Assembly: GCA_043228905.1 (NCBI GenBank)
Contig: JBHGNT010000013.1
Location: 11,098,001 to 11,162,000 of the forward strand
Length of the DNA: 64,000 bases
Direction of reading: 5' to 3'
From: Azolla caroliniana
Taxonomy: Eukaryota; Plantae; Polypodiophyta
This document shows, piece by piece, positions 21,116 to 56,206 of the stretch. The notes beneath the pieces were generated by a model. That model saw only the letters and a program-made list of their open reading frames with translations. It was not told the origin of the DNA and did no database searches. The position numbers were made by a program, and so were the translations under genes. Each line of letters begins with the position of its first letter. Position 1 is the stretch's first letter.

Positions 21116-21199
21116 CATCCGACTCCGTAGCCGGGGTCTTCATCATCCGGCTCCGTAGCCGGGGTCTTCTTCATCCGGCTCCGTAGCCGGGGTCTTCTT
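21116..21199. repeat. 28-bp tandem repeat x3 in A3 U3 (also 25861-25944)
   Basis: Unit catccggctccgtagccggggtcttc(a/t)t. Confidence 0.85.
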
Positions 21200-21291
21200 C
21201 ATCCTCCGGTTCCGTAACCGCAACCGGGCTTGCCGTCATTCATCTCCGGACATCCCATCCGGAGGGACCGAAATCCCAACAAACTCCCCCT

Positions 21292-25365: not shown

Positions 25366-27273
25366 TGCAGTCGCTCTGATACCAGATTGTTAGGGATTGA
25401 CGCTTTCCAACCGTCACCTCTCGGCCACAACCGAGGAAACACGAATCAATGCAGCAGAAAATCGAAAACACAGAGAGAGACTCGAATGCACAGGATTTAT
25501 CGTGGAAAACCCTAGACGGGAAAAACCACGGGAGTGTAAGACTCCAACTATCACTATACGCAGGGAATGTACAATGGCGAGCTGTAAGGCGACGACCTTG
25601 AGCTCGCTGTCCTCGCCACAGGCGGCGGTATTACACAGAGGCGTCGACCTCTTCCTTTCTCTCTCTCTCGGCTGCTCTCACTTCGCTCCCTCTAAGTGGA
25701 AAACAGAAACATGAGCAACAACCCCAACAAACTGTTTGCCCTAAGTCATATTTATACACATATGACTTTCGGGCTATTTACAAATATAGCCTCAAGGACC
25801 CTTGGCAAACATATTCACAGATATGTCCCCGCATCCGGATCTCTCTCCGGGTACATTCATCATCTGGCTCCGTAGCCGGGGTCTTCATCATCCGGCTCCG
25901 TAGCCGGGGTCTTCTTCATCCGGCTCCGTAGCCGGGGTCTTCTTCATCCTCCGGTTCCGTAACCGCAACCGGGCTTGCCGTCATTCATCTCCGGACATCC
26001 CATCCGGAGGGACTGAAATCCCAACACGATCCACTTGTGCCAGAGATCGATGTCTGATTCAATCTTCTGTCATGTAGCAAACATGGCGGTGCCGACGTCA
26101 TTAGTGTTGAGGAGCAACAATCTCCCTTCTCTGCGCCCTTGCGCAATTATCCGGCCTTCTTCCTCGATGAAGCACCCGAGGTGCGTAAACCTTACCGGCA
26201 TTCCCTAGCCGACGATTTGTCCGACCGACACCAGGTTCTTTGTCATAGTTGGAATGTGTAATACGTTCATCAACTTCCCCTTTTGTCCGACATGGCTTAA
26301 AGGGACTTCTCCGACATGCACAATCGGGTGAGGGGTGACGTCTCCAGTTTCGACAATCCCCGGTCGTTCCAGTTTTTCCAAAAAGGAGAACCACTATTCA
26401 TGGCTCGTCATGTGGTTGGATGCTCCGGAATCAACATACCATACTTCCTCCGATTTGGAAGTTGTCTTCTTCATCAAGTTAGCCTTGTGCTTCATCACGA
26501 AGGTTGGCCCTTTATCGGTCTTCCTAGTTCTGGATCCTTCCAATCCTTTTGCGTAGTGCGAGCTTTGTCGGTTTTCCCGACCGGCCTTGCCAGATCCAGA
26601 TTTGTCCGAATCGGCACGCTTCTTCCAGCACTCCCTTTCCCTATGGCCCTTTTAACCACAATACCAGCATTTTGTGTCAGCCTTTCCTTGCCGGTTCCCA
26701 GCGCCGCTTCGACTCCCCCTGCTTGTGGAGGGTCCGGAACTGTTGCCAGCACTGTCTTTGTGCCTTCGGTCCTGCTCTTGCCGGCCGCCTCCATTGCGTG
26801 CCGATCCACCTCGTCCTGCACGTCCACGGGGCCGATCCGACTACGTGTACAATGTTATTCTCTGACCGGACAAGGCCTAACACAAGGTGTCACGGAGACA
26901 CTTCACCAAAGGGTGATTACGGCATAGGATTATGACTCAACGATTACACTGACCTAAGTAGGTTACACGATTAGAGCGCTTTTGTTAATTACACGCGTAA
27001 GATATAACAGTAAGTACAGAACGGAAATCAACACAGAAGTATAAACACCATACGCTCTATTAATTATCCGCTGCGATTACAATGGGGTCCGGGCCTTTAA
27101 ATAGGTTTCCGGCCCGTAGTACAAAACGGTGCCTATCGCACCTATTCGGGATCCGTCCGGATCTGGAACGGCATACCGTTTCCAGTCCGTCCGTCCACAC
27201 TATGCTTATTTACAACCATACTTAATTAATTCCTTCACTCCGTATTTTGGACTCCTTGCCGGCCGGTAACACA

Positions 27274-27290
27274 TGGCACGCCCGTGGGAC
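27274..27290 (+). promoter_or_regulatory. Inverted tRNA-type primer-binding motif at the PPT position of G2
   Basis: TGGCACGCCCGTGGGAC 2 nt from the 3' LTR on the antisense strand; conserved in G3. Confidence 0.7.
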
Positions 27291-27323
27291 AGTACCTTGT
27301 ACGTCGAACCCTTCTCGGCCCCT

Positions 27324-29968
27324 TCATTGTTCACCCAAATTGTCCAAAATACTTTGTTCCAGAGTTTCCAATTGTTCTTCCGGTTGTGGTTGTTGCGGCT
27401 GTGCTTGCTGCTGCTGCTGTGGTTGCGGTTGGGACTGAGACTGCTCCGTTTGTTTCTCTGACTCCGGCATCCCCGTTTGACTGCTTCCGGTCCGGTCTCC
27501 TTCCAGTAACGGGTCCTCATCACTGAGATTGACCGTTACTGGTTCTCGTGCTTTCTCTTCCCGGATCCGGGACCTCTCGTAGCTTTCAAATTGGATCTGC
27601 GCCTCCAGCCTGTCGTCGTCCAGCTGAGCTACAAGTTGCCGGACTTGCCCTAGTTGGTCCTCTGCCAAGGCTTGAAAGTCTTCGGCCAGCTCATCTCTTA
27701 TGCTGGTGAAGTCTTCGGAAGTCAGCATATAGCAATCATCTCCCTCCTTCCGCCGGTTCTCTACGTCGGCCTGGAGCAATTGGAGTTCCGCCGCGTTCGG
27801 GGCCCACTTGGTCCACCATTTGACGGAACCGTTGTCAATCAAGCTCTTGGTCTGGTTCAACCAGGCCCGCATGATATCCTGGATGCGACTTGCTCCCATT
27901 TGCGCTCTACTTTCCACAACTTGTCGTTCCTCCTTCAACTGCTTGATGAGATTAGCCGTATCCTCCGCCTGCTCTCTGTAGCGCGTCAGCTGCCCTTGAT
28001 ATGTTGTTTGCAGCCTCTGCAGTACCTCCACCGCTCTTTCTTTTTCCGCCTGCTGTTGCCTGAGGAGCTCTGTCCGAACCTTCTCCGCCTCTTCCAACTG
28101 TCTTCTGGTTTCCGCTTGTTCCTTAGCGTATGCCGTTGCGGTCCGATCAACTTCTTGCCGGAGCTCATCCGTCCGTTCCTTGTGCTCCGTTTGCAACCGT
28201 TTATACTCCCGGTGCAAGTGCTCAAATTCCTCCGTTTTTTGTTTGAGCTTGCCGTTGATCTGGCGATGGTTCCGGTCCTCCCGGTCCTTTAGCTGCCGGA
28301 GTTCCTCTTTCAAGCGCTCTACTTCTGTTTCGGCGTTTCTCCGGAGCCTGTCCTTCTCTTGTAGCATTTTCTCCTTCTCCTCCTTGAGCCACTCGTACGC
28401 TTGGTGGCCTTTTCGTAAGCTCTCCTCGGCCCGGCGTAGATTCTCAGCAGTCTTTTTGAGTTCTGCCTCCGCTGCCGTCTTCAACTCTCTTTCGCGGCTC
28501 CTCAGCGCTTCTTGGGCAGCTAGCTCATCCTTTAAGTCCGCAAGCTCTTGGGCTTGTGCCGCATTTCTCTCCGGAACGGTTTCCGTTGCCGGGGTCTGAT
28601 TGCTATGTACAGGTTGATCTGACGCTTTATTCTGTACATTGCCCGGAGTCACCGGTGCTTGGACTTGTGTTGTCAAAGCCAATTGAGCCATTTCCCTTGT
28701 GACCCTGTCCAAGTCTTGTTCAAGGCTCCGGATTCTGGACCGGGCCGTCTCTAGATCTACGGTTGTGACGAGCAACCGTTCGTGGTGCGCTCTCTCCTCC
28801 GCCTCTATGTACTCGACCGCTCCAGCGATCTGCTCGCCTACCCACTGTAGCCACATGCTACTGGTGCCTTGCTGCTGTACTGGTTGGGTCGGCTCGTTCA
28901 CTGTGGAATTGTCTGGCCTGAGTGCCTGTATCTGCCGTTCTGGTTCTACTCCTTGGCCGCTGTGTGTGCTGGCTAGGATCGCCAGCTGTTGAGTTCCGGT
29001 TCTCGCCGTCTCCGGAGCCGTTGGAATGACTTCTTGTATAGAAGTCGACAAGGCCGGTTCTATACGCACCGGTTCCGGTTCCTCCCTTGTGGTTTGCTCA
29101 GGTTGAGTTGGGGGCGTTTCTTCCTTTTGCGGGTCCGAACGCTCCCCCGCTGTCCCGACGGTCCTACTTCTTGACCGTCGTTGGAGGTGCTCTACTGGCT
29201 CCTCCGTTTCCTCTTCCTGGGTAACGGCATGTATCTGTGCCGTCAAGGGTTCTGGTTCCTTCTGTCCCGGTCGCCGTATGGTTATCTTAACGGGTCGAAC
29301 CGGTGACACCTCCTCCGGTTCTGGGAGCCGTTTCTTCCCTTTCGTCGCCTTCGACGCCAGCAACTGCTGTCGTTTGGACGCGGGTTTCGAGGTGCTTCCT
29401 TCCGATAATCTTGGCCGCTTCTTTGGCTGGACGGTCTCGACCGGCGGCGCGAGCAATGTTATCCACTGAGCTACGACATGCCATAGCTTCCGGCCCTCCT
29501 TGCCGTCCTTTCCTCGTACCGTGTCGATTGCCGCGCACAAACCGTCTGCAATCAACACCGGCCAATCCACCTTGATCCCTTCATAGGTGGCTATGATCAT
29601 CCCTGCCCGTTTTTTGGCATGACAGGGGGTCGGGGGTACACGTGGCCGTACTCATGGAGCACTCGAGCTATCTCCCTCAATAGCGGATCTTCGCCGCCCT
29701 GCGTTCGATAGCCTTTGCCGGCTAGAGAGTACTCTCCGAAATATCGGATGAGTTGCTCCGAGGTTGGGTTATCGATCTGAAAAATACCTCCCTCCGGAAG
29801 TCCTGTTAGCGCACGGATCGCTTCCTCGGTGATGACTTCTGTGTCGAGCTCCTTGATGACCCGGTCGGCTTCTTTGTGCGGTGGTGCCTCCATGATGGTC
29901 AAGAACCCATCCAGTCCGTGTTGCCTGAGCCATTTCCTGGCCGCTTCCGACAGCGTTTGTGGTTCCAT
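27324..29968 (-). CDS. G2 ORF3: PMD-like N-terminus, basic segment, long coiled coil (about 880 aa; 1-bp frameshift near 29610)
   Basis: ORFs 29597-29968 and 27324-29600 align to the continuous N-terminal ORF of G3; ITEEAIRALTGLPEGG motif; E/K/R/Q heptads. Confidence 0.8.
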
Positions 29969-30243
29969 GTCTGCTTCGAGGTCGAGGAAAGATGGCGCGG
30001 TAGAGTGGTGATGAGAGTGAGAGCGAGAGAGAGAGAGTTCCGAACGTGGGGGTTCTCTGAGTGCAGGTTCGCGTTTGCTAGGCTTCCACTGCCTTGGTGC
30101 TTCTGTGCGTCTTGGCGCCTTTTCCGAGCATGCGCACGTCGTGTACCAATTTAGTATTAAGTAATGTGGCGGCTCTTAAATGCCCACTACGTACCTTTTC
30201 GCTCCTTGCTTTCACGTCCGTTCATACCTCGATTTTTAATGAT

Positions 30244-30244
30244 T

Positions 30245-30279
<35 letters not shown>

Positions 30280-30288
30280 TTATTAATA
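30244..30288. repeat. (ATTT)n tract just after G2 pol
   Basis: Read directly; equivalent tract in G3 at 50176-50269. Confidence 0.9.
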
Positions 30289-30305
30289 AATGACGGTATG
30301 TGATC

Positions 30306-33300
30306 TTACACATCCGTAGGTCCCTTCGGACCCTTACCGTTTTCCTTACGGGTTGCCGTGTCTTCCTTCGCCTCTGCTACGGGTTCCCCGTCGTCTTTTT
30401 CTTCCATCCGTACCGTTCCCGGTATAGTGCCGGTGGGCTGCATAAACGGGTTATTTGGCATCGGTCCTTTATAGGGCTTTAGTCTAAATCCGTTGACCCA
30501 CTTGCCTAGCACTTCACCGGCAAGTGTCCCTAACTGATAGGACCCGTTGTATTCCCGTGTCAGCCAATACGGGCCTGTCCATCTAAACCGGAGTTTACCC
30601 GGCATCTTGCCCATCCTCGTTTGGAATACTAGCACCGGCTTTCCGATTTCGAACATCTTTTCATTACCTTTCCGGTGACGGTCAACGAACGCTTTCCGTC
30701 GTCGTTGCTCCAGTTCCATGTGTAGGATGCTGGCCAGCCGTTGCTCCTCTAGTTCGCATAGTGCTGCTAGCCGCATTTCCTCCGACTCCTTTTCATTCAG
30801 CCGTTCCCGTAGTTGGATCCGTAAGCTTGGTACCTGAAATTCCATCGGCATGACCGCCTCTAAGCCGAACGCTAACCGGAACGGCGTTGTCCGGATACTT
30901 GTTTTGTATGCCATTCGGTATGCCCATAGCGCGCTATGGAGCTTTGTATCCCAGTCCGTCCGGTTTTCATTGACGATTTTGCGGAGAATGTTCTGGAGCG
31001 TTTTGTTGGTTGACTCTGCTAACCCGTTTGCTTGTGGGTAGTACGGTGTGCTCCGTTTATGGACCACGGCATAGAACGTTGTTAAGCTTTCAACTACCTG
31101 GCCGAGGAAGTGCCCTCCTTGGTCGCTGATTAATTCAATCGGACATCCATATCGGCACCAAATGTTTTCGTACAGGAATTTTGCTGTGGATGACGCGGTG
31201 TTGTCTCTCAAGGCCTTAGCCTCCACCCATTTAGTGCAATAATCTGTTGCCACGATGACATAACGATTACCCGTTCTCATTGCCGGTGGCTTGAACGGTC
31301 CGACAAAATCTAACCCCCACTTCTGGAATGGCTCTAGTGGAAGTACCGGTTGGTGTGGCATCCGTGCTTGCTCCGTAGGCTGGCCCATTCGTTGGCATAG
31401 GTCACATTCCTTAGCATACTTGACGGCGTCTTTTAACGTCGTGGGCCACCATAAGCCGCTCTGCCATACTTTCCTTGTCGTCGCTTCCCCGGCATAGTGT
31501 CCTCCGGCAACCCCACAGTGTGCTTCCCGTAAGATTACTTGTTTCTCGTCACTACGGACTGCCCGTCTCCATATTCCATCTGCTCCCTTGTGGTAGAGAG
31601 TGTCCCGTAACAGACAGAAATTGCAGCTCTGCACCGCCAGTCGTTTCCTCTCGTCCCGGTTCATTTCCTCCGGTGGCAGGCCCGTGCTTAGGAACTGGTG
31701 CATGTTTGTCAGCCACCTATCTTCTGATGCCACCGTGTCGTCCGCTGCCGTTTCCGGGGTGATACGGAATAACTCTGCGTCCGGGAATTCATTCGATACT
31801 CCGTCGCCTGATTCTCCGGACTCTAACCGGCTCAGGTAGTCTGCTATGGCATGCTGGATACCGGGCCGGTGGAAGATCTCGAATTCGAACTCCTGCAACA
31901 GCAAGGTCCAACGGGCCAACTTACCGGTCAGGGACGCCTTGGACACCAAGTACAGGAGCGCCGAGTGATCCACATGAAAGGAGAACTTCCTTCCCAATAG
32001 GTAATGACGAAACTTTGTGACACTGTAGATCATGCCCAGGGCCTCCCGTTCCATCGTCGAAAAGTTCTACTCCGCTTGGGACAGCTTCCGGCTGGCGTAA
32101 TATACCGGCCGGTACCATTTAGGCTCCGTAAGTTGCATTAAGGCGCTGCCGATAGCGATGTCGGAAGCGTTAACGAACACATGAAATTCCTTGCTCCAAT
32201 CCGGAGGCTGCACGACGGGTGCTTGCGACAAAAGTACCTTTAGGGCATTGTATGCCTTATCCTCCGTATCCGTCCATTGGAACGGTTTCCGATGTACCGC
32301 GGTGTGTAATGGTGTAGCCAAGTCAGCCAAGTGACGGAGCATCCGGCTGTGCCACCGGATCTGTCCTAAGAATCGGCTTAGTGCTTTGGCCGTTTTCGGC
32401 GCCGGTGCCCCTAGTATCGCGTTTACTTTGTCCGGGTCGACCGCAATGCCCTCCTTACTTACAATGTGTCCCAGTAATATTCCACTTGAAACCCCAAAGA
32501 TGCATTTTGCTGGGTTTAAGCTTAGCCGGTATAACCTACACTTTTCAAGGCATAACCGTAGGTGCTGCAAATGGTCTTTTTCCCGGCTATAGACTGCAAA
32601 GTCATCCAGGAAAACCTGCATGAAGGCTAGAATGTATTCACCGAAGATCTCCATGATGATTCGCTGGAAAGTTGCTGGTGCCGTTTTTAGTCCGAACATC
32701 ATTACTACGGCCACAAACACCCCCCATTCGGTGACGAACGCTGTCTTCTCCTGGTCGTCAGGGTGCATCCGGATTTGATTGTATCCGCTGAACCCGTCTA
32801 AAAAGCTATAAACTTCATGGCCGGCGACGGCATCCAGTACTCCATCCATGAACGGAAGAGGGAATGCATCCGTAATTGTGGCTGCATTTAGTTTCCTGTA
32901 ATCTACACACACGCGGATTTTACCGTTCTTCTTTGGGACGACGACGATGGGGCTCAGCCACGTCGCTTTCTTTACCGGCCGGATGAAGCCCACTCTTAGG
33001 AGTTTGTCGATTTCCTCCTTCACTTTGGCGGCGTAGTTGGGGTTCATTCGGTAACGTCTTTGCGCCACTGGTTTCGCGTCCTTGCCTAAGTGGATCTGAT
33101 GCTGATATAATTGAGGGTCCAGCCCTCGCATGTCTTCGTATGACCAGGCGAATACGTCGCGAAACTCCGTGAGAAGTTTGATCATCGCCGCTTTATCTTC
33201 CGGCTTCATTTCTTTGCCGATGTGTACCGGCTTTGATTCGTCCTTGCTTCCTAGGTTCACTTCGTCGAGCTGGGATGTTTTTACCCGTTGGGAAACGGCC

Positions 33301-35861
33301 ATTTCCCGTTCCAACGCTTCCTGTGCTTGCTGTAATTCCCGGATCGAATCTTTGTCTGGTTCGGCTTCGGTTTCGTCCCGCTGCGGCAAGTATGGCGCTA
33401 CGGCTTCAGCTACGTCAATCTCGAAGAGTGGTACGATCTTCGGGTGTTCCTCCAAGTACTGGGCTTCTTCGTCGTCTGCCAACCCTTCAAGCATGTTCAC
33501 GCATTCCGCATACAGCGGTGTGCATTCCTTACCGTTGCTCGTCCGTGGTTGTGTTGGTACCCGGACCTTGGCTTTTCCGCGCCGGAAGGTAATCATATTT
33601 TTCCGCCAATTTTGCTTGATGTGTGCTGTTTTCAACCATGGTCTGCCCAGCAACAGTGGGTACGCGCCTTGCGCCTGTAGCTGCAGCACGACAGCCGAGA
33701 TGTGAAATGTGTGACCTCCTATGGTGACTTCCAATAACGGACATGGCTCCCATTCATGTATACCCAAGGCATCACACGTGCGGAGGCTTATTACGTTCAC
33801 CCCGGAACCTCCATCGATTACTGTGCCGGGAAGTTCGTGCCCTTTGACAATAGCTGTAATCACCGGACTACTAGTGTCCACCACCGTCGGTCCCTCCTCC
33901 GGATTCGAGAAGAGGACTGGTGCCGGTGGGGCTATACCGTCTGTCATGACTGTTTTTAGTCCTTCCGTAAATCGCGGCACGAGCTGCAAGAGTCTTCCTA
34001 ATGGCAACGTGATCTGACATTCTTGCAGTGCTTGCCATGTCTCGTTTTCTGCATGGCTACCGCCGGCATTCCCTATGGTATTCGCCTTTTGCCGTTCCGC
34101 GTCCGCGACGTTCCTTTCATTGGCTTCCTTCACCCATTCCGTCGCCTGTTTTCGTATGGCCTCTTGTGTTTCCCACTCTTTGGCCATGCCTTTCGACTGT
34201 GTGGTTACTTGCTGTACATCCGCCACTTCCGGAACCACCATATTAACTGCTGGTCGTTTATCGTAGCTCTTTGCTGGGCACTGGTTACTGTAGTGGCCTT
34301 CCTGCCTGCAGTAATAGCAGTACTCTTTACGGATATTGCTGGATTCAGCATTGCTGGTAGCCGGAGTCGGTCCCGTAGTGAGTGGTGCGTTCTGTGCCGG
34401 TTGGCTCCTTGGGGTTCCATGTTCCGGGTCCCTAGGGTGACTACCTTTCTTGAAATTACGTTTCTTATTATTCTTATTTTTATTTCGGTAGTCCTGTCGC
34501 GGTGGATCGTAACATCGGCCGTAGTCCTCCTGGTGCCTTCGGTAACCAGGGGAATGGTCTCTGTCGTATTGCTCGTGTCGTCTGTTGGACTCCCGATAAC
34601 GGTCTGATCGCTCATACCGGTCGTAGTTATCATGCCGATCCCCGTACCGGCCACCATTCTCTTATCTGTCTCCGTACCAGACATCCTGTGCCGGTCGGTA
34701 CCGGTTCATTCTTTGCCAACGATCGTCATCTTCGTCTCGGCTGCTTCTTGGCTCGATCCGTCGGACGGGTGGTGCTTGTCGGTTTAACAGGTTATACTCG
34801 CACCGGTCCATTGTATGACTCTTGGATTGACAAATCACACACTGGGTTCGCATGGTGCACTCCACTGCCGAGTGTCCAGCATTCAAGCAGATTGTGCATT
34901 GAATTGCTTGCCGGAACCGGAGATCTTCATCGGTGGGTAACGCCCGTTGCAGTGTTCCCAGTGTAAGCCATGAGCTTGACTTTTCCATTTCTCTGACCCG
35001 GTCAATGACCTGGTCAATGGTGCTTCCTCGAAAGTCGATTACCGTACATACCGTGCGTAACGGTTCCCGGAGTGCGTTTAAAAATATCGTCCGTAATTCC
35101 TCCTCCGGGGGTGCACGGGCAAGCTGGCTATGCATTCGTTGGAAACGGATGACGAATTGGGGAATGCTTTTCCCTGCCTCCTGTCGGATCGTATAAAACA
35201 TGCCCACCATTGTCGTCTGGTCAACCTCCTTGTGGAAAAAATGCAAGAATTTTGCTTTTAATTCTGCAAAGGTTGTGATGGTCGCCGGGTCCTGCGTCCG
35301 CCGCCATCGTGCCGCTGGTCCTTCCAACGTGACCCCGAATTCCGCTATCTTCGAGCGTTCTTCTTCCTCCGGTGTCATTCGCTGGGACGCGTGATTTGCT
35401 TCCCATGTCTGCTCGAAGGCATGAACATGCGCTTCCGCATCCGGATCATCGCGATACTTTGAGTATTGGAACGGCAGGTCGTCGTCCAGTATTAGGCCGC
35501 GGTTTAGTGGCGTTTGTTGATATCTTTCCGGTTTTCTCTCCGGTTCCACTTCCGGTTCTTTTGCCGGTGCTTTTTCCGGTTCCTCTTCCGGTTCTTTTTC
35601 CGGTTCCTTCACCGGCTCTTCTTCCGGTACCTTCGCCGGCTCTTTCGTTGGTGTCGGTGGCTTTGCTTCTTCCACTTCCGGTGTTGGTGGGTTGACGGCT
35701 TCCGTTTGCGGTTCCGGATAGCCCTGGTCGAACGGTTCCGGTTCTGGAGTCGGCACGGTATCCGACCCGTCGTCCTCCGGGCTGCCGGGGGTATCGTTGC
35801 TGCTCCGTTCGGCGAGGCGTCGAGCTCGGTCTGTAACCAAGTCGTGCGTTGGTCTCGTCAT
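30306..35861 (-). pseudogene. G2 gag-pol with few lesions
   Basis: ORFs 34662-35861 (gag), 32067-34241 (IDGGS protease, FLDD RT), 30306-32054 (RH-INT; SDQGGHF, YYPQANGLAE, GPY). Confidence 0.93.
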
Positions 35862-35896
35862 CCATTACCGTCGTTCGCTGCGAGAAAGCAGGAATC

Positions 35897-35906
35897 GTGG
35901 TCGCCA
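35897..35906 (-). promoter_or_regulatory. G2 PBS, tRNA-Arg-like
   Basis: TGGCGACCAC 6 nt after the 5' LTR; identical in G3 (56243-56252); tRNA identity from recall. Confidence 0.75.
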
Positions 35907-37210
35907 AAACTGTGTTATTCTCTGACCGGACAAGGCCTAACACAAGGTGTCACGGAGACACTTCACCAAAGGGTGATTACGGCATAGGATTATGACTTAA
36001 CGATTACACCGACCTAAGTAGGTTACACGATTAGAGCGCTTTTGTTAATTACACGCGTAAGATATAACAGTAAGTACAGAACGGAAATCAACACAGAAGT
36101 ATAAACACCATACGCTCTATTAATTATCCGCTGCGATTACAATGGGGTCCGGGCCTTTAAATAGGTTTCCGGCCCGTAGTACAAAACGGTGCCTATCGCA
36201 CCTATTCGGGATCCGTCCGGATCTGGAACGGCATACCGTTTCCAGTCCGTCCGTCCACACTATGCTTATTTACAACCATACTTAATTAATTCCTTCACTC
36301 CGTATTTTGGACTCCTTGCCGGCCGGTAACATACAACATGCGGCTGTCCGATTGAGTGGTCCTCAAGCCGCTCGCATGGTTTTCTTCGATCATTAGGATT
36401 GATTGCAAGTCGAAGAAGGACGATGGCTTCTCCAGGGTGTAGATCGCTGTCCGGATTGGCCCATACGATTGTGCTAGACCATTGAAGCAGATTTGGACAA
36501 TCTTGTCTTCGTCCACCATCACGTTGATGGACCCGAGCATTGTCGTGAAGAAAACCGGCCATAGGCGGAATCGAAGAAAAAGGCGCATGAACCGGCTCTT
36601 ACACGGGTGGACGCGAGGATTGATATATTGTACATAATTCGTAGTTAGGGCGACTGGTGTAAATACTAGGTAGTGCATATTTATTAGGGGATTTTGTGCG
36701 TATCTCTGTCGACGGGACAGGGAATAAAGTAGTTTGGCTGAGGAAAAGGGGCACCCCTTTTTGGGGGAACTATTTAAGGAGAGAGAGGAGGAGGGAACAG
36801 GTATCGCGCACTAGGTAGGATGAAGTGCTGCTGCAGATCTGAGTGCCGAGCTCTCTCTTCTCCTCCGGCCGTCGGTCTCTGTGGGTCGGGAGCTCGCTGC
36901 CTCTGCTTCGTGGACAGCCCGTGCGCTTCCAGTAGAGGCTCTCCCCCCCCCTTTTTTTTTGTTTGTTTCTGGGAGTCGAGCGAGTGCTATATGTGTGTGT
37001 GAGTAGGATCCCCGTGTCAGGTCCATCACCGCCTTGTCGGTTGTAACCGTCAAAGTTGTATTCTCTTGTTATTGAAATCAAGTGTTACATTCTATATCTC
37101 TCCTTCTCGCTTCGCGTATCTACAAATCTCTCTCTCTCTCTCTCTCCTCGGTTCAAGACCCCCGTGGTCCCGCCCCTTCTACATGCATGCGCATAACAAC
37201 GCGACATATT

Positions 37211-37227: not shown

Positions 37228-37251
37228 ACGGGGCGGCAAAGGAGTCGAAAG

Positions 37252-44509: not shown

Positions 44510-46808
44510 ATGGTTGCTTGACTGGAGATCTATTTGGATTAGGCAAGTAGGGTTGGACATCAGCCACTTTCCCAAGATCTCAAAGTGCATAGGCATCTTG
44601 TATCATCAAAGACCAATCAACTCCTTTCCAAAAGTGTGTGTGGTACTTAGTTTAAACATTCGAAGAATATCATCTAACTTAAAATATTCTAGGGGCCGAG
44701 TCATGTTATATTTGAGGACACTCATTCCCCCCATGTCGTTTGGCATTGCCTTTGACATCGTCTGGCAACCATAGTGGTCAACATGTGTTTTTACGTATGC
44801 ACTAGCGATGCCATGATCACGAAGATCACTTGCCCAATGTTTCTTTAACTCTTTAATAGTCGACGATAAAGGGTGATTGGTTGCCCCACTATATGCCGCC
44901 AATACTACCTCCCTCCACTGTATGATGTAAACAACTATCGAACCATCATGGTTGGCTCATTAATCGCAAAACTATTTGGATGTATAATGGAATCAAAGAT
45001 AAGTGTATGGGCTGAAAAAAGTGGTAAGAGAGCTTATGGACAAGCTGGCTTTCGGAAACACCATAGCACCATTGATCACCTTATTGCCCTTCCAGTATTA
45101 ATGGAGGAAAGTCGCCTTAGAGGTGAAGGTTTATATTGTTGCTTTGTAGACTTCAAGAAAGCTTTTGATATGGTACCTCGTGAGCATCTTTGGAGGCGAA
45201 TGGAAGAACTTGAGGTGCCAAGTGAATATATGCTTGCAATTTCTCGAATTTATGAGGTGCGCATGAGAGATAAACTTTCAGATTTTTTTCAAAAGCACTA
45301 TTGGTGTTAAGCAAGGATGCCCACTCTCACCAACACTATTTGGTCTATGCATTGATGAATTGGAAGAAATGGTTACCAAGTTTGCAAAAGAAGAATGTGT
45401 TGAAGAAGTTGCCATTGGGAATGTTGTGATTATGCTTTTGCTATATGCAGATGATGTAGTGCTTTTTGCAAATACTTTAGGAGATGCACAAAAGCTTATG
45501 AAGGCATTGGAAAAAATTTGCATGCATACTAAATTAAGTGTCAATAGCTCTAAAACAAAGATTATGCTTGTGAAGAGCCAAAAAAGAGATAAACCATGCA
45601 TTATGTACAACAATGAGCCTCTTGAATGTGTGGAAAGCTTCAAATATCTTGGCCTTGAAGTTCCTTCAAATCATAGATGGAATGAATGTGCTACACGCCG
45701 CTTAGAGGCGGGCAAGCGAGCATACTATGCATTTGAGAACACATGCAATCTTGGAGATATTAAGTGTTGGGTCCTCAAGAAATATCTTTTCGACACTTTG
45801 GTGACACCGATTCTTCTCTATGGGGTGGAAGTATGGGGCGGTAGCATCCCTAAATCTATATGGAAAGAGTTTGAAAATGTCCAAAAGCATTTTCTTACCA
45901 AGTTTCTACAAGTTAAGAAACAAACGCCCTACACCCTCATCCTCCTTGAGACGGGATTGCTTCCCATTGAGATCATGGCCATGGAAAGGGTTGTTGAATA
46001 CATCCTTAAGGTTCAAAAAAGTCCCTCACATCGACTTCCTAGAATTGCGTGGGAAGCAAGCAAAAATATCCAAAAGATGCATAAAAGCAAAATTTTGTGT
46101 TCCGGTTGGATGCAAGATATAGAAAAATGGTTTGGTAGATGGGATGCTACACACTTGCTTCATGATGCATCATTAGATTCCTCTGTAAATGAGGCATTTT
46201 TGCAACGCCAATGTATCATGACATGGGAGAAATGTGGAGGCTCACGCTTCACACATTATACTACACATGTTGCACCTAACTACAAAACCATATTCTTTGC
46301 GGAATGGGGAAATCGTACACATCCATACATGTTAGAGCCCATACCGTTATCTGCCATTCGAACCATTGCTTCCATGCGACTTAGCTCACATGCATTACGA
46401 TGTGAAACAGGGCGTTGGGGTACAAGTGATGAGAGTGGTCGGTGTTGTCTGTCTGGCCGGACTAGCTTCAACACAGGTGTCTATCCGACACTTCTCCAAA
46501 GGGGTGGTAAGGATTGGATGCTAGGTTACACGCATCAGATAATTACAATAAGCACGGACGGCAAACAATACGAGATACAGATAAATACACGACAATTACT
46601 ATTGTATTACTTCCGTCGAAACACTTTACAAATCATCGGATCCTTTTATAGGCATCCGGCAAGGTTACAATTGGTGCGCTTAGGCAACCGACATCCGAAT
46701 CGGTTCCAACTGTACCGAATCCGTCCCTCCGAATAATAATTCTACTATTACTTCCTATTATCCGATCCGCCTTCCCACTTGTCCTTGCTCTTCTGACCGG
46801 CCAACACA

Positions 46809-46824
46809 TGGCACGCCCGTGGGA
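46809..46824 (+). promoter_or_regulatory. Inverted tRNA-type primer-binding motif at the PPT position of G3
   Basis: TGGCACGCCCGTGGGA 2 nt from the 3' LTR; identical to G2. Confidence 0.7.
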
Positions 46825-46856
46825 AAGTGCCTTGCACTTCGAATCCACACCCGACC

Positions 46857-49799
46857 TCAGTCTTCCTCCAAAATATCGAGCACACTTTGCTCGATAGTGT
46901 CAAGTGGTGCTTCTTCCTCCTGTTCCTGTTCCTTGCCTACCTGGTCTCCGACCTCCTGTTGGGTAGGCTGTTCCGTAAAAATTTTCTGCTCCGGCTCTGC
47001 TTGATTCCGTGGTGCCGGTGCTTCCTCACCGTTTCGTCCGGGTTCTTCCTGTTCTCCCTCCGTTCCTGGCTCTGTTCTGTTACCGGTGTCGTTTTCTCCG
47101 GTCTCGACTGGTCGACTTGATATGCCTCCTTCCTCTGCTCTGGTGTCTTCCGGTCTCAGCTCTTCTTCTTCTCCGGCATCGGTCCGCTCCTGCTCTTCTT
47201 CTTCTCCGGCATCGGTCCACTCCTGCTCTTCTTCGAGTTCGTCTTCAGGTATTCCTTGTCGGGGTTGTTCGGTGTCGGTTGGTTCATCTTCATCCGGTCG
47301 TGTTCCCTCACCAATAGTGGTTGGCGTCGTTCTTCCCTTAGCTTCCTGTCGTACCCGGTCCTGCTCGTATCTCTCCAACTCCAACTGAGTTGCGAGCTGC
47401 CCGTCATCCAACCTCTCTACCAACCCTCGGATTTCTTTGAGGTGTTCTTCTGCTAAAGTGTAGAAATCCTCCGACAATTCCTCCCGAATGGCGACGATAC
47501 TTTCTTCATCCATCTTGTAGAACCTGTCGCCGGTCTTCTTCCGATTCTCGGCATCCGCTCGGAGTGTCTGCAGCTCGGCTGCCTGTTGTGACCACTCCTT
47601 CCATAGCTTTTCCGTACTTTCGTTGATACTTGCCTGAGCTCGGGTACTCCATCCTGACATGATGAGCTTGATCCGGTCAACTCCTGCCTTAGCATGCGCA
47701 TAAGCTTCCTGCTTTTCCTTCCTTGCCCGTTTTATAATGTCGGCCATTATCTGAGCCTGGGCCTCGTAATCTGCTTTCTGCTTTTCATAGGTACTCTGCA
47801 GTTTGCTGATCGTGAAGGTCGATTTTTCCTTTTCTTCATTCCTGATCTTGGTCAGGTCTAGCTTTTCCCGCCTTAGCGCCTCTAATTCCTTCCTTCTCTC
47901 CGTTGCTTGGGCTATTTCTGCCGACAATGCTTCCTTGTTGGCACTGACCTCATCCATCGCCTTAGCCAGGTCTAATCAGGTCTCTTTGAGCTGCTCTTTC
48001 AGCTTCTCTATTTGCCGGTCGTAGTCTGCTGCTCGTTTTTTGTTGTCCGACTTGGCCTGCTTGTGATCTCTGTAGAGACGGTCGAAGTCCTCCGTCTTCT
48101 GCTTCAGGCGTCGGGTTGCCTGAGCTCTTAACCGATCGTCCCGGTCCTTCTGTTGTCGGAGTTCTTCCTGTAGTCGTTCTATCTCTTGTTCGGCATGTCG
48201 ACGTAGTCGGTCCTTCTCCTTCTACAGCTTCTCTTTTTCTTCTTGCAGTCGGTCATTAGCGGCTCGACCTTTCCGGAGGCCTTCTTCCATTTTTCGTCTG
48301 TCATCCTCCACCGCTTTCCGCTGCTCCCTTTCTCTTTCCCTTAATGCCTCCTGAGCTTGTAACTCCTCTCGTAAGGTTTCTATTATTTTTTCGGTCTCAG
48401 GGCCGGTTTGCAAGGCTACCGGTTCCGGTTCCGGTTCTGGTTCTGGTTGCTTCCTTGTTGTCCCGACCGGCTCGGTGACAGCTTGTGCTTGTTGGATTCC
48501 TTCCCTTGCCTACAACAGCTCCCCTTGCATTTCCTCGATCTGTGTTCGGAGCGCGACCAACTCCTGCGTTGTTGTATGCGTCAGCTGTTGCCGACACGTT
48601 TCTTCTTTCTCTAACTGGTCCGCTACTCCCGATAACTGCTCCGAAAGCCATCTCAGCCATTGTGGCTTTGTTCTTCCGATTTCGGGGTGGCCTTGCTCAC
48701 TTAAACCAGGCTGATTTTCCGGCCTCTTCTCTGGCTCTGGCTCCGGCGCTCGTTCCTTCTTCTTCTCTGGGATGACCGGTTTTCTGAAGTCCGGCCCAAC
48801 CGGTGTCGGTGCTGCTTCCCTGGGTACAGGTTCCGGTGCTATTTCCGCCTCGGCTACTGGAGATGGTCCTTGCGCCCTCTGCTGAGTTCTGTCCACTGGT
48901 GGAGCCGGTCCTTTCGCCCGTTTCTCCCGACCTTGTCTTGCTGGGAGTCTTACCAGGGGTTCGGATGAGTCTTCTGTTTCAGTTTCCTCCTCCGGTGCGG
49001 GTACCAGACGGACCTTTTGTCTAGAGACCTCTGGTTCCGGTTCCGGCCGTCGCAGCGTTATATGGATTGGTTTGCGCGCTACCGGTTCCTCCTCAGCCGC
49101 TTTCCCTTTGCCTTTACCTGCCGGTTTTGCCTTTGTGGCCGGTTCCTGTTGCTGTCGGGATGGTCATTCCCCCTGCTGTTCTGCTTCTTGCGGGGTCCAT
49201 CCGGGGGTGTGTTTCTCCAAGATCTGTCGGCGCTTTGTGACCTGTTTTGGCGTCGTCTCCTGCCGACCTCTTTTCTTTTGTGTGATGGGGAGTACCGGTG
49301 GGACTAACACCGTTAGCCATTGTGCTATCCCGGCCCATGGCGTTTTTCCTTCCACCAGATTTTTGATGGCCTCCTTCAATCCTTCGGTTATGAAATGGAG
49401 CCAGTCTATTTGTAAGCCCTCGTACGCTGCTATCAAGAATGTTGCCCGATACTTGGCTGTGGCTGGGGGACGGGGATTCACGAATCCGTATTCCATCATA
49501 GCGCGGGCCACTTCTCCGAACAGCAGGTTCTCTCCGCCCTGCGTTCGGTACGCCTTGCTACTGATAGAGTATTCCCCGAAATATTCGAACAGGATTTCAC
49601 TGGAAGGGTTTTCGATTGTTTGCAGTCCTCCCGCTTTGATCCCCGTGAGTGCCTGCACCGCTCCTTCCGTGACTTCTGATATATCGATCGATGCTGCCGC
49701 CTGCTCTGGTTCTGCGTGTGGTGGAGCGTCGGCGATCCGCAACAAGCCTTTTAACCCGTTTTCCCTCATCCATTGGCGTGCCTCTTCTGACAGTACCAT
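46857..49799 (-). pseudogene. G3 ORF3 (PMD-like plus coiled coil) with several stops
   Basis: ORFs 49164-50063, 48510-48896, 48222-48413, 46857-47957 homologous to G2 ORF3. Confidence 0.8.
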
Positions 49800-50281
49800 T
49801 GCTTCGAATTCTTTGTCTGCTGCCTGGTGTTCGGGATCGCGCTGTGTGTGCTCTGTGCGTCGGGTCGCTCTTCTGTGCTTCTTCGCCTGTATGTAGGAAA
49901 ATTCGTAAAACGTGAGCCCTTCGCAAGCCTGTGTCTTATATAGTGGGTTGTGCCTCGAGCCGTCCTTTTTCGTTTCCCGCGCATGTTCCTCTCCCGCCAT
50001 AATTAGTATGTCCTTTCTTGTTTGCCGCGTGTGAGTGCCCACGTTCTCTGCTTTAAATAGCAAGTGCGCACACGTTCTTCTTTAATGCATGGCGCCTCTT
50101 CGTTGCATGGTGGCGTTCCCACCTCTTGTGATCTCCCCATCATTACGATGATTCACGTCGATTCTGCCCACATCATTTTTTATTTTATTTTATTTTATTT
50201 TTTATTTTTATCTTTTATTTTTATTTTTATTTTCATTTTTATTTATTTTTTTATTTTTTTATTTTTTTTGCTTGGACCACG

Positions 50282-53200
50282 TCATTTGCTGGTCCCCCCC
50301 CCTTTGTTCGGGTCGGTTCGGGTCGGTTCGTGTCGGTTTTCCGGGATGGTCCTCGTCAGTATCAGTGTCGGTTCTTCCTCGGTCCGAATGTCTTCAGCAG
50401 CGTCTGTCAGTGTCGGTTCTTCCTCTTGCCGGATTTCCGGGTTTCGCTTGAACGGGTTGGCTGGCATATTTCCTTTATACGGCTTTAGCCGAAATCCATT
50501 TGCCCACTTGCCGATGACATCTCCAGACAACGTGCCGAGCTGATACGACCCATTGTACTCCTTGGTGATCCAGAACGGTCCGGTCCATCGAAACCGCAAC
50601 TTTCCCGGCATGTTCCCCATCCTTGTCTGGAATAGTAGCACCGGTTTCCCGACTTCGAACTCCTTTTCATTGCCACGTCGGTGTCGGTCCACGAAGGCTT
50701 TTCTCCTCCTTTGCTCCAGTTCGAGTTGTAGTAAGCTGGCTATTCGGTTTTCCTCTAATTCCAACAGCGTTGCCAGTCGGATTCGTTCGGACTCGTTCTC
50801 ACTTAAGCGCTCCTTTACCTGAATCCGTAAGCTGGGGATCTGGAACTCTACCGGCATGACCGCTTCTAACCCGAATGCTAGTCGGAACGGGGTTGTCCGG
50901 ATGCTGGTTTTGTACGTTGTTCGGTACGCCCATAGCGCGCTTTGCAATTTCGTATCCCAGTCGGTCCGGTTCTCGTTGACGATTTTTCGTAGGATGTTCT
51001 GCAGAGTTTTGTTCGTTGATTCCGCCAGTCCATTGGCTTGAGGGTAGTAGGGTGTACTCTTTTTATGTACCACCGCGTAAAATGACGTCAGGCTTTCTAC
51101 TACCTGCCCGAGAAAATGTCCTCCTTGGTCACTTATAAGCTCGATCGGGCATCCATACCGGCACCATATGCATTCGTACAGAAACTTTGCCGTGGAAGCG
51201 GCCGTGTTGTCCCGTAAGGCCTTTGCTTCTACCCATTTGGTGCAATAGTCGGTCGCCACTATGACATACCGATTTCCGGTTCGCATTGCCGGTGGTTTGA
51301 AGGGACCGACAAAGTCCAACCCCCACTTTTAAAATGGTTCTAAGGGCAAGACCGGGTGGTGTGGCATCCGAGCCTGCTCTGTGAGTTGGCCCAGTCATTG
51401 ACACAAATCGCATTCTCTGCTATACTTCACGGCATCTTTTAGGGTGGTCGGCCACCACAGTCCGCTCTGCCATATTTTCCGAGCGGTGGCGTCGCCGGCA
51501 TAATGCCCGCCGGCAATTCCACAGTGGGCTTCCCTAAGGATTAGATCCTTCTCATCACTCCGCACTGCTCGTCTCCAGATGCCGTCTGCCCCCTTGTGAT
51601 AGAGGGTGTCTCCAACCAAGCAGAAATGTCTACTTCTTACTGCTACCCTTTTCCTTTCATCGCGGTCCATGTTGTCCGGGGGAACTCCGGTGCTCAGGAA
51701 CTGGTGCATCTCAGTTAGCCATGTGTCTTCGTCGGCTACCGTTGTATCCGTTGCCGGTTTTGTCGTGATCCGGAACAATTCGGCGTCGGGAAACTCATCC
51801 TGGACGCCGTCCCTTGCTTCTCCGGATTCAAGTCTGCTTAGATAGTCCGCAACCGCATGCTGCGCCCCGGGTCGGTGGAAAATGTCGAATTCAAATTCCT
51901 GTAGTAGCAGTGTCCACCGTGCAATTTTTCCCGTCAGGGATGCCTTCGAGACCAGGTAGAGTAGTGCCGAATGGTCGACATGGAAGGAAAACTTCCTTCC
52001 GAGCAGATAGTGCCTGTACTTTGTGACACTATACACCATTCCCAATGCCTCGCATTCCGTCGTAGAGTAATTCCGTTCGGCTTTTGAGAGTTTCCGGCTT
52101 GCGTAGTACACCGGTCGGTACCATTTCGGCTCTGTGAGTTGCATCAGAACGCTGCCGATTGCTACGTCCGACGCGTCGACGAAGACGTGAAAGCTTTTAC
52201 TCCAATCCGGCGGTTGCACCACCGGAGCTTGCGACAGCATGACCTTCAACACTTTGTAGGCTTCCTCCTCCGTCTCTGCCCATAGGAAGGGTACCCTATG
52301 TACGGCGGTATGTAACGGTGTAGCGAAGTCCGCGAGGTGCCGTATCATCCGGCTATGCCACCTTATTTGGCCCAGGAACCGGCTTAAAGCATTTGCGTTA
52401 CTCGGTGCTGGTGCATCGAGAATCGCCTTGACTTTATCCGGATCTACCGCGATTCCTTCCTTACTCACCACGTGCCCTAGCAAGTTGCCGCTTGCCACTC
52501 CAAAGACGCACTTGGCCGGATTCAGGCTCAATCGGTACTCGCGGCACTTCTCCAAGCACAGCCGGAGGTGATCGAGATGCTCTCCGTACCGGCTGTAGAC
52601 CGCGAAATCGTCAAGGAAGACCTGCATAAAACCGGGGATATATTCCCCGAAAATTTCCATTATTATCCTTTGAAAGGTCGCTGGAGCCGTCTTTAGTCCG
52701 AACATCATCACGACCGCGACGAACACTCCCCATTCCGTCACGAACGCTGTCTTCTCTTGGTCGGCCGGGTTCATTCGTATTTGGTTGTAGCCGCTAAATC
52801 CATCCAGGAAGCTGTAAACTTCGTGCCCGGCTACCGCATCTAACACCCCGTCCGTAAATGGTAGTGGAAACGCATCGGTCACTGTTGCGGCATTTAGTTT
52901 TCGGTAGTCCACGCATACCCGGATTTTTCCGTTCTTTTTCGGGACCACCACTATCGGACTCAGCCAGGTTGCCTGCTTGACCGGTCGGATAAATCCGACC
53001 CGGAGGAGCTTATCAATTTCCTCCTTCACCTTTGCCGCATAATTCGGATTCATCCGGTACCTGCGTTGAGCAATCGGTTTCGCGTCCATACTTAGGTGAA
53101 TTTGGTGCTGATAGAGCTGGGGGTCCAACCCTCGCATGTCTTCGTATGACCACGCGAACACATCCTTGAAGTCTGTTAACAATGCTACCATTGCCTTCTT

Positions 53201-56200
53201 TTCTTCCTTCGGCAATTCCTTTGCAACATTTACCGGTCGGGGCTTGTCTGCTGTGCCGAGGTCCACCTCCTCGAGTTGGGATGCTTTTACCCTCTGGGAT
53301 ATCGTCATTTCCCTCTCTAGGGATTCCTACGCTTGTCGTAGTTCCCGGATCGCCGCTTGGTCCGGTTCTTCCGGCGTCGTAATGTACGGTTCTACTGCCG
53401 CCGTGATATCCACCTCAAATAGTGGGACGATTCGTGGGTGTTCCTCGAGGTACCGCTCGACTTCCTCGTCCGGTAATCCCTCCAACATGTTAATGCTTTC
53501 CGCATACAATGGAGTTGCTTCCTTACTGGTGATCACCCGTGGTTGCGTCGTTACTCGTACCTTTGTTTTCCCTCGCCGGAATGTGATCATGTTCTTTTGC
53601 CAGTTCTGCTTGATATGCGCCGTCCGCAGCCATGGTCGTCCTAGCAGTAGGGGGTACGCGCCTTGTACATTCAGCTGCAGCACCACGGCCGATATCCGGA
53701 ATACGTGGCCTCCGATCGTGATTTCCAAATCCCGGATAAGCCCGGTCGGTCGGACTGAGCTAGTATCCGCCATGCGTAACCAGAAGGGGCATGGTTCCCA
53801 TTCCCGGATGCCCAGGTCGTTGCATGTCTGTTGGCTGATGACATTTACCCCAGAGCCTCCGTTAATAATCGTTCCAGCAATTTCCTTTCCTTTTACGATT
53901 GTCGTGATCGCCGGGCTACTTGTATCGACCACCGCTGGTCCTTCCTCCGGGTTGGAGAAGAATGCCGGTGCTGGCGTCGGCTTCGGTTTGCTGACGGATG
54001 CCTGTAAGTCTGCCGTAAATCGTGGCACTAACTGTAGTAGTCGTGCTAATGGCAGCACGATTTGACAGTCCTGTAGCGCTTGCCACGTCGGGTTTTCTCC
54101 TTGCTGTATAATTTCTTCGTCTTTTGGCATATTTCGGTCTCTTACTTCTGCCGCATTCTGTTCATTGGCCTTCTTGATCCATTGTGTCGCTTGTTTTCTG
54201 ATTGCCTCCTGGGCTTCCCACTCGGCGGTCTTTCCCTTTGATCGGGTTGTGACCTGCTGTACTTCTGTTATTTCAGCTGTAACCATGTTGACTTCCGGCT
54301 GCTTGTCATAGCTTTTGCTTGGGCATTGGTTACTATAGTGGCCTTCCTTGCGGCAGTAATAACAGTACACCTTGTGACTGTTGCTCGTTTCTCCTTTGTC
54401 CCCGGTTTGGAGGGTGGGTATGCTCCGGCGGTCGTCTTCGGTTTTTCGGTTATCCGGTACGGATATCGGGTTGTCATTCCTTGCTGCCTCCCGACGTTCC
54501 TCTCTTCGGAAAAATCCACGCTTCTGATTCCGTCGGAAATTTCGGTTCCCTTGTCTCCTCTCTTCTCTGCGTCGGTCGTATTCCGGGGCTCCGTCTCGGT
54601 CGTACCGGTCCCGGGGGTAGCTATCTTTACGTCTCTTCTCTCGGTCATAGTTGTCGCGTCTTCTATCAGCGTATCCTTGTCGCCTCTCTTCTCCGCATCT
54701 GTCGTCTTCCGGGGATTCGTCTCTGTCGTACTGGTCCCGGGGGTAGCTATCTCTGCGTCTCTCCTCTCGGTCATAGTTGTCGCGTCTTCTATCAGCATAT
54801 CTGTTACCGCGTTCGCGTTGGTAGCGGTCGTCTCTCCGGAATCGATCCTCTTCCGGGTTCTGATTGCGCGGTTCTATGTGTCGAACCGGTGCTGCCTGCC
54901 GATTTAACAGGTTGTATTCGCATCGGTCCGTTGTATGAGCTCGAGAGTTGCAGATCACACATTGTGTCCGCAGGGTGCAGTCTACTGTTGAGTGCCCCGA
55001 ATTCAGGCATGTTGTACATTGTAAGGCCTGTCGGAACCTCAGGTCTTCCTCTTTTGGGAGTGCCCGGTGTAACATCCCCATCGACAAGAAGGGGCTAGTC
55101 TTGTCCATTTCTAAAACCCGATCAATAACTTGGTCCATTGTGCTGGTTTGGAAATCAAGGACTCCGCACATTGTTCGAAGTGGCTCTTTCAGTGCGGCCA
55201 GAAAGACTGCTTTGGCTTCGTCTTCGGGGGGTGTTCTTGTCAGTTGGCTGTGCAGGGTCTGGAACCGAATGATGAATTGTGGCATAGTCTCGTTCTCTTC
55301 CTGCCGGGTGGTGTAGAATTGCCCGACCAATTCCCTTTGCTCAAATTGTCGGTGAAAAAACCTGAGGAATCTGGCCTTCAAGGCATCGAATGTGGCAAAG
55401 GTGCCTGGTAAGTGCTTTGCGTGCCATTGGGCCGCCGGTCCTTCTAAGGTTATGCCGAATTCGGCGATTTTGGATCGTTCGGCTTCGGGCTCCGTCAGTC
55501 TTTGGGAGATATGGTTGGCTTCCCATGTTTGGAGGAATGCGTACACGTGTGCCTCCGCGTCGGCCTCATCCCGGTACTTTGGGTATGGGTACGACATCGT
55601 GTCGTCCAAATGACTCTCCTGTTCCCTCCGTTCTCTGTCCGCTGTTGGCGTTGGTGTGAGAACCTTTGGTTCCTCCGCGGGTGTTGCCGGTGTCCGGTCC
55701 GTTGGTTCCTCCGCGGGTGTTGTCGGAATCCGCTCCTTCGGTTCCCTCGCGGTTGTTGTCGGTATCCGGTCAGCCTTCCTCGACGGTTGCCGGTCACCGA
55801 ATTCCAGGGTTATTTCTTCCTCTGGCGCCGGTGTTACTGAGTCTTCCGATCCCTCGTCCTCCCGGTCGTTTGGTGTGTCGTGGCTGCTTTTATACCGGGA
55901 TGCAACGCTTCCGTCGCTTTCCGACTCCGCCTCAAGTGTTGCGAATGCTTCCGAGTCCCCGTCGCCCGCGGCGAGCGTCTGCAGTATCGTTTCCGCCTCT
56001 TGCAGGCTTGTTATGCTACTGCCTTCGTCGGGGATTTGCAGAACCCGGAACTACAGTGCTTCTTCTGCGACTCTCCGAAGAGTTTTGGAGAATGACCGAT
56101 CCCGCCGGATCTCGTCGACGGCTTGCTGCAGGGCTTCCCGTCGTTGCTCGCGTTCGGTGTATCGTCTCCCTCGTTCGGTGATGTGGTCGTCGTTTGGTCT

Positions 56201-56206
56201 AGACAT
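50282..56206 (-). pseudogene. G3 gag-pol with stops
   Basis: ORFs 53327-55609, 51395-53308 (FLDD), 50282-51319; N-terminus MSRPNDDH at 56206 resembles G2 MTRPTHD. Confidence 0.92.
54549..54800. repeat. 126-bp (42-aa) tandem duplication in the R/D-rich part of G3 Gag
   Basis: YADRRRDNYDRE...EERRQG occurs twice. Confidence 0.85.

Follow-up and report, generated by a model that had tools for sequence, protein, structure and literature searches.

How does an LTR retrotransposon that has no polypurine tract (PPT) prime its plus strand? Plus-strand priming from a PPT is treated as universal in retroviruses and LTR retrotransposons (e.g. PMC5371799, PMC6317226), and annotation tools look for a PPT. 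A preliminary description of the window, a stretch of 64,000 nucleotides of the Azolla caroliniana genome (contig JBHGNT010000013.1, positions 11,098,001 to 11,162,000), raised the question for an element called G2, in which no purine tract was seen before the 3′ LTR and a motif shaped like a tRNA 3′ end stood in its place.

LTR retrotransposons fill nearly the whole window. G2 (26853..36331, minus strand) is a complete Ty3/gypsy element, as shown by its LTR repeats, target site duplication (TSD) and ORFs. Its 3′ LTR (26853..27271, minus strand; sense start TGTTACCGGCC at 27271, TGTTACC) and 5′ LTR (35913..36331, minus strand) are both 419 bp long, share 99.5% identity, have the ends TGTTA...TAACA and are flanked on both sides by the TSD TACAA (26848-26852 and 36332-36336). 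Between them lie the ORFs for gag (34662-35861), PR/RT (32067-34241) and RH-IN (30306-32054), and ORF3 (27324-29600, 758 aa). G3 (46442..56637, minus strand, TSD GTCGG) is a second complete and divergent element whose pol is about 72% identical to that of G2 and whose LTRs (46442-46806 for the 3′ and 56258-56637 for the 5′ LTR) end in TGTTG...CAACA. In both elements the LTR limits are set by the repeats and the 5-bp target duplications. The gag, RT, RNase H-integrase and ORF3 frames of G2 and G3 are all on the minus strand, and the low-coordinate LTR is therefore the 3′ LTR. An in-frame TAG (32067-32069, minus strand) splits the RNase H domain of G2 over two ORFs, G3 being uninterrupted there. 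Tandem duplications are found within the gag region of G3 (126 nt, 54549-54800) and, as 54-nt repeats, in two related elements (12583-12978 and 17431-17880).

The Pfam order on the minus strand, Retrotrans_gag, RVT_1, RT_RNaseH, Integrase_H2C2 and rve, is that of Ty3/gypsy elements (Metaviridae), and G2 and G3 share with this family the TG...CA LTRs with a 5-bp TSD, the gene order and the 5′ primer binding site (PBS), the PPT being absent. Compared with the criteria for the plant non-chromovirus OTA group (Athila/Tat; Neumann 2019, PMC6317226), the two elements resemble OTA types in that a further sense ORF follows pol ahead of the 3′ LTR and a chromodomain is lacking: Pfam gave no Chromo match downstream of the integrase. 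The archaeal-type RNase H (RVT_3) that marks Tat elements was found by Pfam in neither G2 nor G3 nor related ORFs; the more distant Vitis matches do have PF13456. We had considered an archaeal RNase H or another domain in ORF3 and its relatives and rejected it, since the 758-aa protein and its relatives have no Pfam match. By similarity, the nearest named proteins are 34-48% identical and belong to Riccia, Adiantum, Pinus taeda and Vitis. ORF3 (27324-29600, minus strand) has homologues in only a few metagenome contigs and is lineage-specific.

The PPT position of G2 is occupied by a non-coding block that lies beyond the ORF3 stop at 27324. In sense direction it opens with a T-loop-like segment, GGGTTCGA (27304..27311, minus strand), which equals tRNA nt 51-58 (5′ strand of the T-stem and T-loop) and forms the upstream limit of the conserved block. 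A 13-nt hairpin with a 4-bp stem and an AAG loop follows (27291..27303, minus strand), and then a 17-mer, GTCCCACGGGCGTGCCA, read from 27290 to 27274 and ending in GCCA. Between its CCA and the first LTR base at 27271 stand two nucleotides, sense TG (27273-27272), the pair that linear cDNA should carry beyond each LTR end until integrase trims it; this spacer is NG across all families compared. The arrangement of motif, TG and LTR is thus as first described. G3 carries the same series on the minus strand, with the 17-mer at 46809-46825, the hairpin at 46826-46838, the T-loop-like segment GGATTCGA at 46839-46846 and the TG spacer at 46807-46808. The two 17-mers differ only at their first base (T in G3 for G in G2), so that the 18 nt beside the LTR are identical as claimed, and the LTRs themselves are otherwise dissimilar, BLAST aligning only ~60 nt next to the leader. 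With up to 2 mismatches allowed, the window contains two occurrences of the 17-mer, where chance would give 0.02.

This block is not purine-rich (8/15 purines). Over the 20 nt that precede the 3′ LTR of G2 and G3, no purine run exceeds 3 nt, compared with 5-11 nt in four control elements (a liverwort relative and one element from each of three further LTR families in the window), which bears out the reported lack of a purine tract. The three window families, represented by the elements at 36541-43635, 5930-11695 and 20643-26026, have a clear PPT abutting the LTR. A hidden PPT was considered and rejected: the purine-rich stretches 40-55 nt upstream, as in G2 and G3, are unconserved, one related element (L042) having none, and are too far from the U3 edge. 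The element at 36541-43635 also has a (CT)n microsatellite in its LTR, which is ~50 bp longer in the 3′ than in the 5′ copy (43500-43575 vs 37128-37150).

The 17-mer equals nt 59-76 of eukaryotic tRNA-Arg(UCU), CCA included, with nt 66 missing. This identity comes from a pattern scan of metagenome contigs that returned 120 loci, ~96 of which are 73-nt eukaryotic-type tRNA-Arg(UCU) genes ending in ...GTGGGTTCGAGTCCCAC(C/T)GGGCGTG followed by T runs. The tRNA-Arg assignment of the preliminary description, with a motif 1 nt shorter, was therefore right. The hairpin is inserted exactly at tRNA position 58/59, a boundary that is the usual stop of reverse transcriptase on a tRNA. The block does not qualify as a tRNA gene or pseudogene: ARAGORN found no tRNA and no cloverleaf in the window, and the only Rfam match of the block was to tmRNA, at 10.7 bits against a gathering score of 47. 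Only nt 51-76 of the tRNA are represented in it. On minus-strand cDNA the 17-mer reads as a PBS placed 2 nt from the LTR, and the mirror image of normal PBS geometry can be read directly from the sequence.

Related metagenome contigs carry longer traces of the same tRNA. In L042, the end of ORF3, the block and an LTR are followed by a 32-nt PBS for tRNA-Arg(UCU) in ORF sense, and L097 and L078 hold complements of the mature tRNA-Arg(UCU), CCA included, of 45 and 76 nt. These copies show the mature tRNA reverse-transcribed beside related LTRs, and hence that this group of LTR elements really uses tRNA-Arg(UCU). Metagenome genes and retro-copies together are the basis on which we infer the 3′ end of the host tRNA-Arg(UCU). 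As an observation in its own right, the complementarity of 32 and ~45 nt in the 5′ PBSs of L042 (205-240) and L097 (1160-1215) implies that reverse transcriptase read through past tRNA position 58. L078 (1-2055), like L007 and L075, consists of tandem arrays of LTR, 76-nt mature tRNA-Arg(UCU) complement with CCA and LTR, which look like circle-junction or read-through products; ARAGORN calls their units tRNA-Arg genes, which would inflate tRNA gene counts.

We mapped the contigs of four runs from four species on 27160-27420, where depth is the sum of contigs and not a copy number. In all four species the summed depth peaks at 27268-27311, 6- to 75-fold above the flanks, and there are no variants at 10% or more within 27231-27311, an interval that covers the ~42-nt block. 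The boundaries are sharp, hundreds of contigs diverging just before 27265-68 and just after 27308-11. Nucleotide 66 is missing in >90% of the G2-clade copies in the four species. A second sharply conserved block with a depth peak in the four species lies inside the LTR (27169-27204 and 36229-36264); in sense direction it forms the hairpin GGAAACGG-TATG-CCGTTCC, of which L003 has the compensated version GGAATCGG-TATG-CCGATCC.

Contigs with the block were collected through homologues of ORF3, and more distant relatives through homologues of RT. In L003, ORF3 is only 55% identical and the LTR is different; the block is identical from TTCGA to TGTT. The distant relatives L127 and L128 (complete elements, the latter with TSD TGTAG) and L129 (partial), with RT ORFs of 49-63% identity, have a tRNA-Arg(UCU)-like ...GTGCCA, then GG or AG, then TGTTG, and have neither the hairpin nor the T-loop part. 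L129 retains nt 66, and 12 nt of it agree with the tRNA end without a mismatch; where L127 and L128 depart from that end, the changes are CpG transitions in old copies. The ends of L127 and L128 are mirror images (GCCA-GG/AG-LTR-CT-TGGCGA), their 5′ PBSs standing 2 nt after the LTR and being for other tRNAs. Contigs that end before the LTR (L002, L005, L006) or have no usable LTR junction (L131, L132) are not part of this junction comparison. The last 10-12 nt are thus constant across G2, G3, L003, L042, L127, L128 and L129 despite differing RTs, LTRs and 5′ PBSs, while PPTs in the same window differ between families. The motif, which stands in place of the PPT, is under strong constraint in many families and four species. 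A relative in the liverwort Riccia sorocarpa (38% identity) has an ordinary PPT, and these few points suggest that the tRNA-type site is a derived trait of one subclade among the non-chromovirus gypsy elements of plants. Otherwise unrelated LTRs (G2, G3, L003, L127) also have the first 15 nt of U3 in common, TGTT(A/G)NCCGGCCGG, and the first extra nucleotide on both cDNA ends lengthens the terminal inverted repeat (G-TGTT...AACA-C); this may be an integrase recognition site.

The 5′ PBS of G2, TGGCGACCACGA (35895..35906, minus strand), follows the 5′ LTR after a 6-nt spacer, CAGTTT (35907-35912), and G3 has the same 12-mer (56241..56252, minus strand) after the spacer CTATTT. An ordinary 5′ PBS had been described in both elements, and it is present, although 6 nt from the LTR and not directly adjoining it. 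The 12 nt correspond to the 3′ end of a tRNA of the Arg(UCG/CCG) type, by comparison with a human tRNA as printed in a paper; no eukaryotic tRNA ending in CGTGGTCG was among the fetched metagenome loci. One could suspect that the elements had been read in the wrong direction, the 17-mer being the ordinary minus-strand PBS and replication starting from the strand opposite to gag-pol. Read on the plus strand of the window, the site is indeed a textbook PBS, with 17 nt and a 2-nt spacer, and looks better than the 12-nt site with its 6-nt spacer at the other end. We regard this reading as very improbable, because all ORFs are on the minus strand and because the other end would lack a PPT too, so that the anomaly would remain. 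Two junctions also speak against it. At 62054..62478 (plus strand) a G2-type LTR with CAGTTTT, in the orientation opposite to that of G2, is fused to an antisense RT region in an aberrant copy whose junction coincides with the edge of the 5′ PBS as read in ORF sense; in L042, the LTR beside the ORF3 end is followed by its 32-nt PBS in ORF sense. An unprocessed end of minus-strand cDNA with one nucleotide of its primer still attached would give a joint like that at 62478. The antisense RT part of the rearranged copy (62054-64000) matches G2 32063-33590 at 98%, the joint shows AGTT.T microhomology, and the copy looks like the product of aberrant end-joining of a cDNA end. The joint at the PBS boundary and the ORF-sense PBS of L042 thus support ordinary replication in ORF sense. 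The orientation of the TATA-like box, which had been offered as further evidence, does not help, since the box reads TATTTAAA in sense and TTTAAATA in antisense, a TATA box both ways.

Because the TSDs fix the U3 edge, the end of a plus-strand primer has to lie 0-2 nt from 27272, at ...CCA(NG), where there is no purine tract. This argues that the plus strand is primed at the block, which would itself supply the primer or bind one, and that a tRNA-type site has replaced the PPT. The site is probably an inverted copy of a U5-PBS junction, the reverse complement of that site being exactly ...GCCA-NG-TGTT, and end-joining events of the kind seen at 62478 could be a source of such inverted junctions.

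Our favoured reading, which we advance tentatively and to which we give slightly less than an even chance, is that host tRNA-Arg(UCU) would anneal to the minus-strand DNA and prime the plus strand. Minus-strand cDNA would be started at the ordinary 5′ PBS, as one junction suggests. Once copied past the pre-U3 region, the minus strand carries TGGCACGCCC-GTGGGAC 2 nt from the U3 edge, as can be seen directly in the sequence. The 3′ end of tRNA-Arg(UCU) would anneal there by 10 bp from its CCA end and, beyond a bulged nt 66, by 7 more pairs, to which TCGAACCC beyond the hairpin may add further pairing. Reverse transcriptase would then extend the tRNA through NG and U3-R-U5, RNase H would strip the tRNA as on the other strand, and integrase would trim 2 nt to give the TGTT...AACA ends. 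With tRNA-Arg (of UCG type or UCU) on the genomic RNA and tRNA-Arg(UCU) on the minus-strand DNA, both strands may be primed by host tRNAs and the PPT dispensed with; we hold this wider claim just as tentatively, a little short of evenly balanced. Host-tRNA priming would require no new enzyme specificity. The invariance of the last 10-12 nt is PBS-like behaviour, as of a sequence held by an invariant host partner and unlike that of PPTs, and favours tRNA priming. We know of no precedent for tRNA priming of the plus strand in such elements.

Several properties of the block sit poorly with simple annealing of a tRNA. Because nt 66 is missing in >90% of copies, perfect complementarity to the tRNA has not been selected, and the conserved hairpin and T-loop-like part would be unnecessary. 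The hairpin has the stems GTAC/GTAC in G2, GTGC/GCAC in G3 and GGGC/GCCT in L042, with the AAG loop in all; 100% of the cells are paired, 2/4 pairs show compensatory changes, and the single G-U pair, in L042, fits a fold of the sense strand. The longer hairpin chosen by RNAfold, GGUAC/GUGCC, was rejected because it is broken in L042 and the 4-bp AAG hairpin explains the changes better. These features are better explained if the element encodes its own primer: the 17-mer of the genomic RNA would survive RNase H, be cut after CCA and prime the plus strand as a non-purine equivalent of the PPT, its mimicry exploiting the precise cutting by RNase H at the 3′ end of a DNA-paired tRNA. The positional requirement would be satisfied equally, and the fragment would already be in place and perfectly paired with the template, where it would compete with any tRNA. 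The lasting loss of nt 66 and the covariation of the hairpin would fit such a primer, and the TCA variant of L042 would be harmless to it. The T-loop pentamer UUCGA, which is intact and enclosed by GGG/CCC, suggests a fold at the RNA level. In addition, tRNA priming would require two different tRNA-Arg species for the two strands of G2 and G3. An arbitrary cis primer, however, should co-evolve with RT and drift as PPTs do, yet the last 10-12 nt remain identical to the tRNA at ~50% RT identity and with different minus-strand primers. The primer would also be a mixed, GC-rich RNA, for which RNase H resistance is not known, and shuffled sequences fold just as well, with z from -1.1 to +0.9 for the minimum free energies, on which ground a whole-block RNA fold was rejected. 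We judge an element-encoded primer, the main rival reading, possible but rather unlikely.

The missing nt 66 has one more consequence, which would fit a role for the block other than priming. Because of it, the 17-mer contains, by inspection, a 10-bp complement of the tRNA 5′ end, GCGCCCGUGG, and the block could bring the genome ends together at the RNA level, its partner being either the first 10 nt of tRNA-Arg(UCU) or a 5′ PBS of UCU type, the plus-strand primer then being something not yet recognised. Such tRNA bridges exist in Ty3 and Gypsy, and L042 has a 5′ PBS for the same tRNA that is complementary to the block. Only in L042 does this work, so that cyclisation by pairing of PBS and anti-PBS was rejected as a general rule: the 5′ PBSs of G2, G3, L127 and L128 are for other tRNAs, and in L129, which has nt 66, only 7 bp would pair. 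The bridge would leave the invariant GCCA, the fixed 2-nt distance and the plus-strand primer unexplained, and we consider it improbable. Priming by host tRNA-Arg(UCU) remains the leading hypothesis and not a result. For the dual tRNA priming first proposed, the motif, its geometry and constraint, the replacement of the PPT, the separate 5′ PBS and the ORF-sense cDNA end at 62054-62478 speak in favour, while the 1-nt deletion, the hairpin and the T-loop-like extension are left unexplained by simple annealing.

The two models of the primer can be separated in cDNA ends, where the missing nt 66 is a built-in marker: CAC(C/T)GGG with contiguous TTCGAGTCCCAC would indicate the host tRNA, and CACGGG followed by the hairpin an element-derived primer. 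In either case, a whole abundant clade of plant elements is without a PPT and has in its place the end of a host tRNA, arranged as the exact mirror image of a PBS. Plus-strand priming by a tRNA, if true, would be a new replication mechanism and the first reverse-transcribing element known with a cellular tRNA as plus-strand primer, and both priming steps would be tied to tRNA-Arg supply, tRNA modification and silencing based on tRNA fragments. If the RNA of the element itself is the primer, the selection of primers by RNase H would be retargetable from purine tracts to a tRNA-like hybrid.

One known system to compare is the ordinary tRNA PBS. Like it, the block on minus-strand DNA is complementary to a tRNA 3′ end, starts with TGG, is separated from an LTR end by 2 nt and has its strongest conservation in the first 10-12 nt. 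Unlike it, the block belongs to the opposite strand and the opposite LTR, and the template on which it would start the plus strand is DNA. The block is also never refreshed from the primer, as an ordinary PBS is, so that a 1-nt deletion can persist. Hepadnaviruses likewise prime their plus strand from something other than a purine tract, a capped RNA oligomer moved to DR2, which has no likeness to a tRNA, in genomes without LTRs. Our literature searches, run outside most subscription journals on the motif and on unusual priming sites of LTR elements, found no description of such a site.

In retroviruses and LTR retrotransposons, including Ty3 and HIV-1, the plus strand is primed from a PPT (PMC5371799). 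The block shares with the PPT its position directly upstream of U3, the ~2 nt trimmed by integrase and the definition of the left cDNA end. In contrast to PPTs, which vary, it is the 3′ end of a tRNA with CCA, not purine-rich, and invariant between families. Second, 3′ tRNA-binding sites have been described in the bipartite PBS of Ty3 (PMC5371799) and the 3′ PBS of Drosophila Gypsy (PMC1635307), and these are the closest known cases: like our elements, they have a 5′ PBS and, towards the 3′ end of their genome, a further sequence related to a tRNA. There, however, the genomic RNA is complementary to the tRNA and binds internal tRNA arms, whereas the RNA of the block has the sense of a tRNA 3′ end. 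The Ty3 and Gypsy sites function in starting the minus strand or in circularising the RNA, and both elements keep a normal PPT, which is gone in G2 and G3. The block is thus not a 3′ PBS of the Ty3/Gypsy type, being tRNA-sense, and the 5′ PBSs of G2, G3, L127 and L128 differ, the two tRNAs matching only in L042. Helenus and TRIMp3 (Kojima 2024, PMC10886601) are likewise LTR elements with tRNA-derived sequence. The tRNA-like part of Helenus, interpreted as a pol III promoter, is contained in the LTR, and the element has a PBS and a PPT besides, whereas the block of G2 and G3 stands outside the TSD-defined LTR, at the PPT position of autonomous elements.
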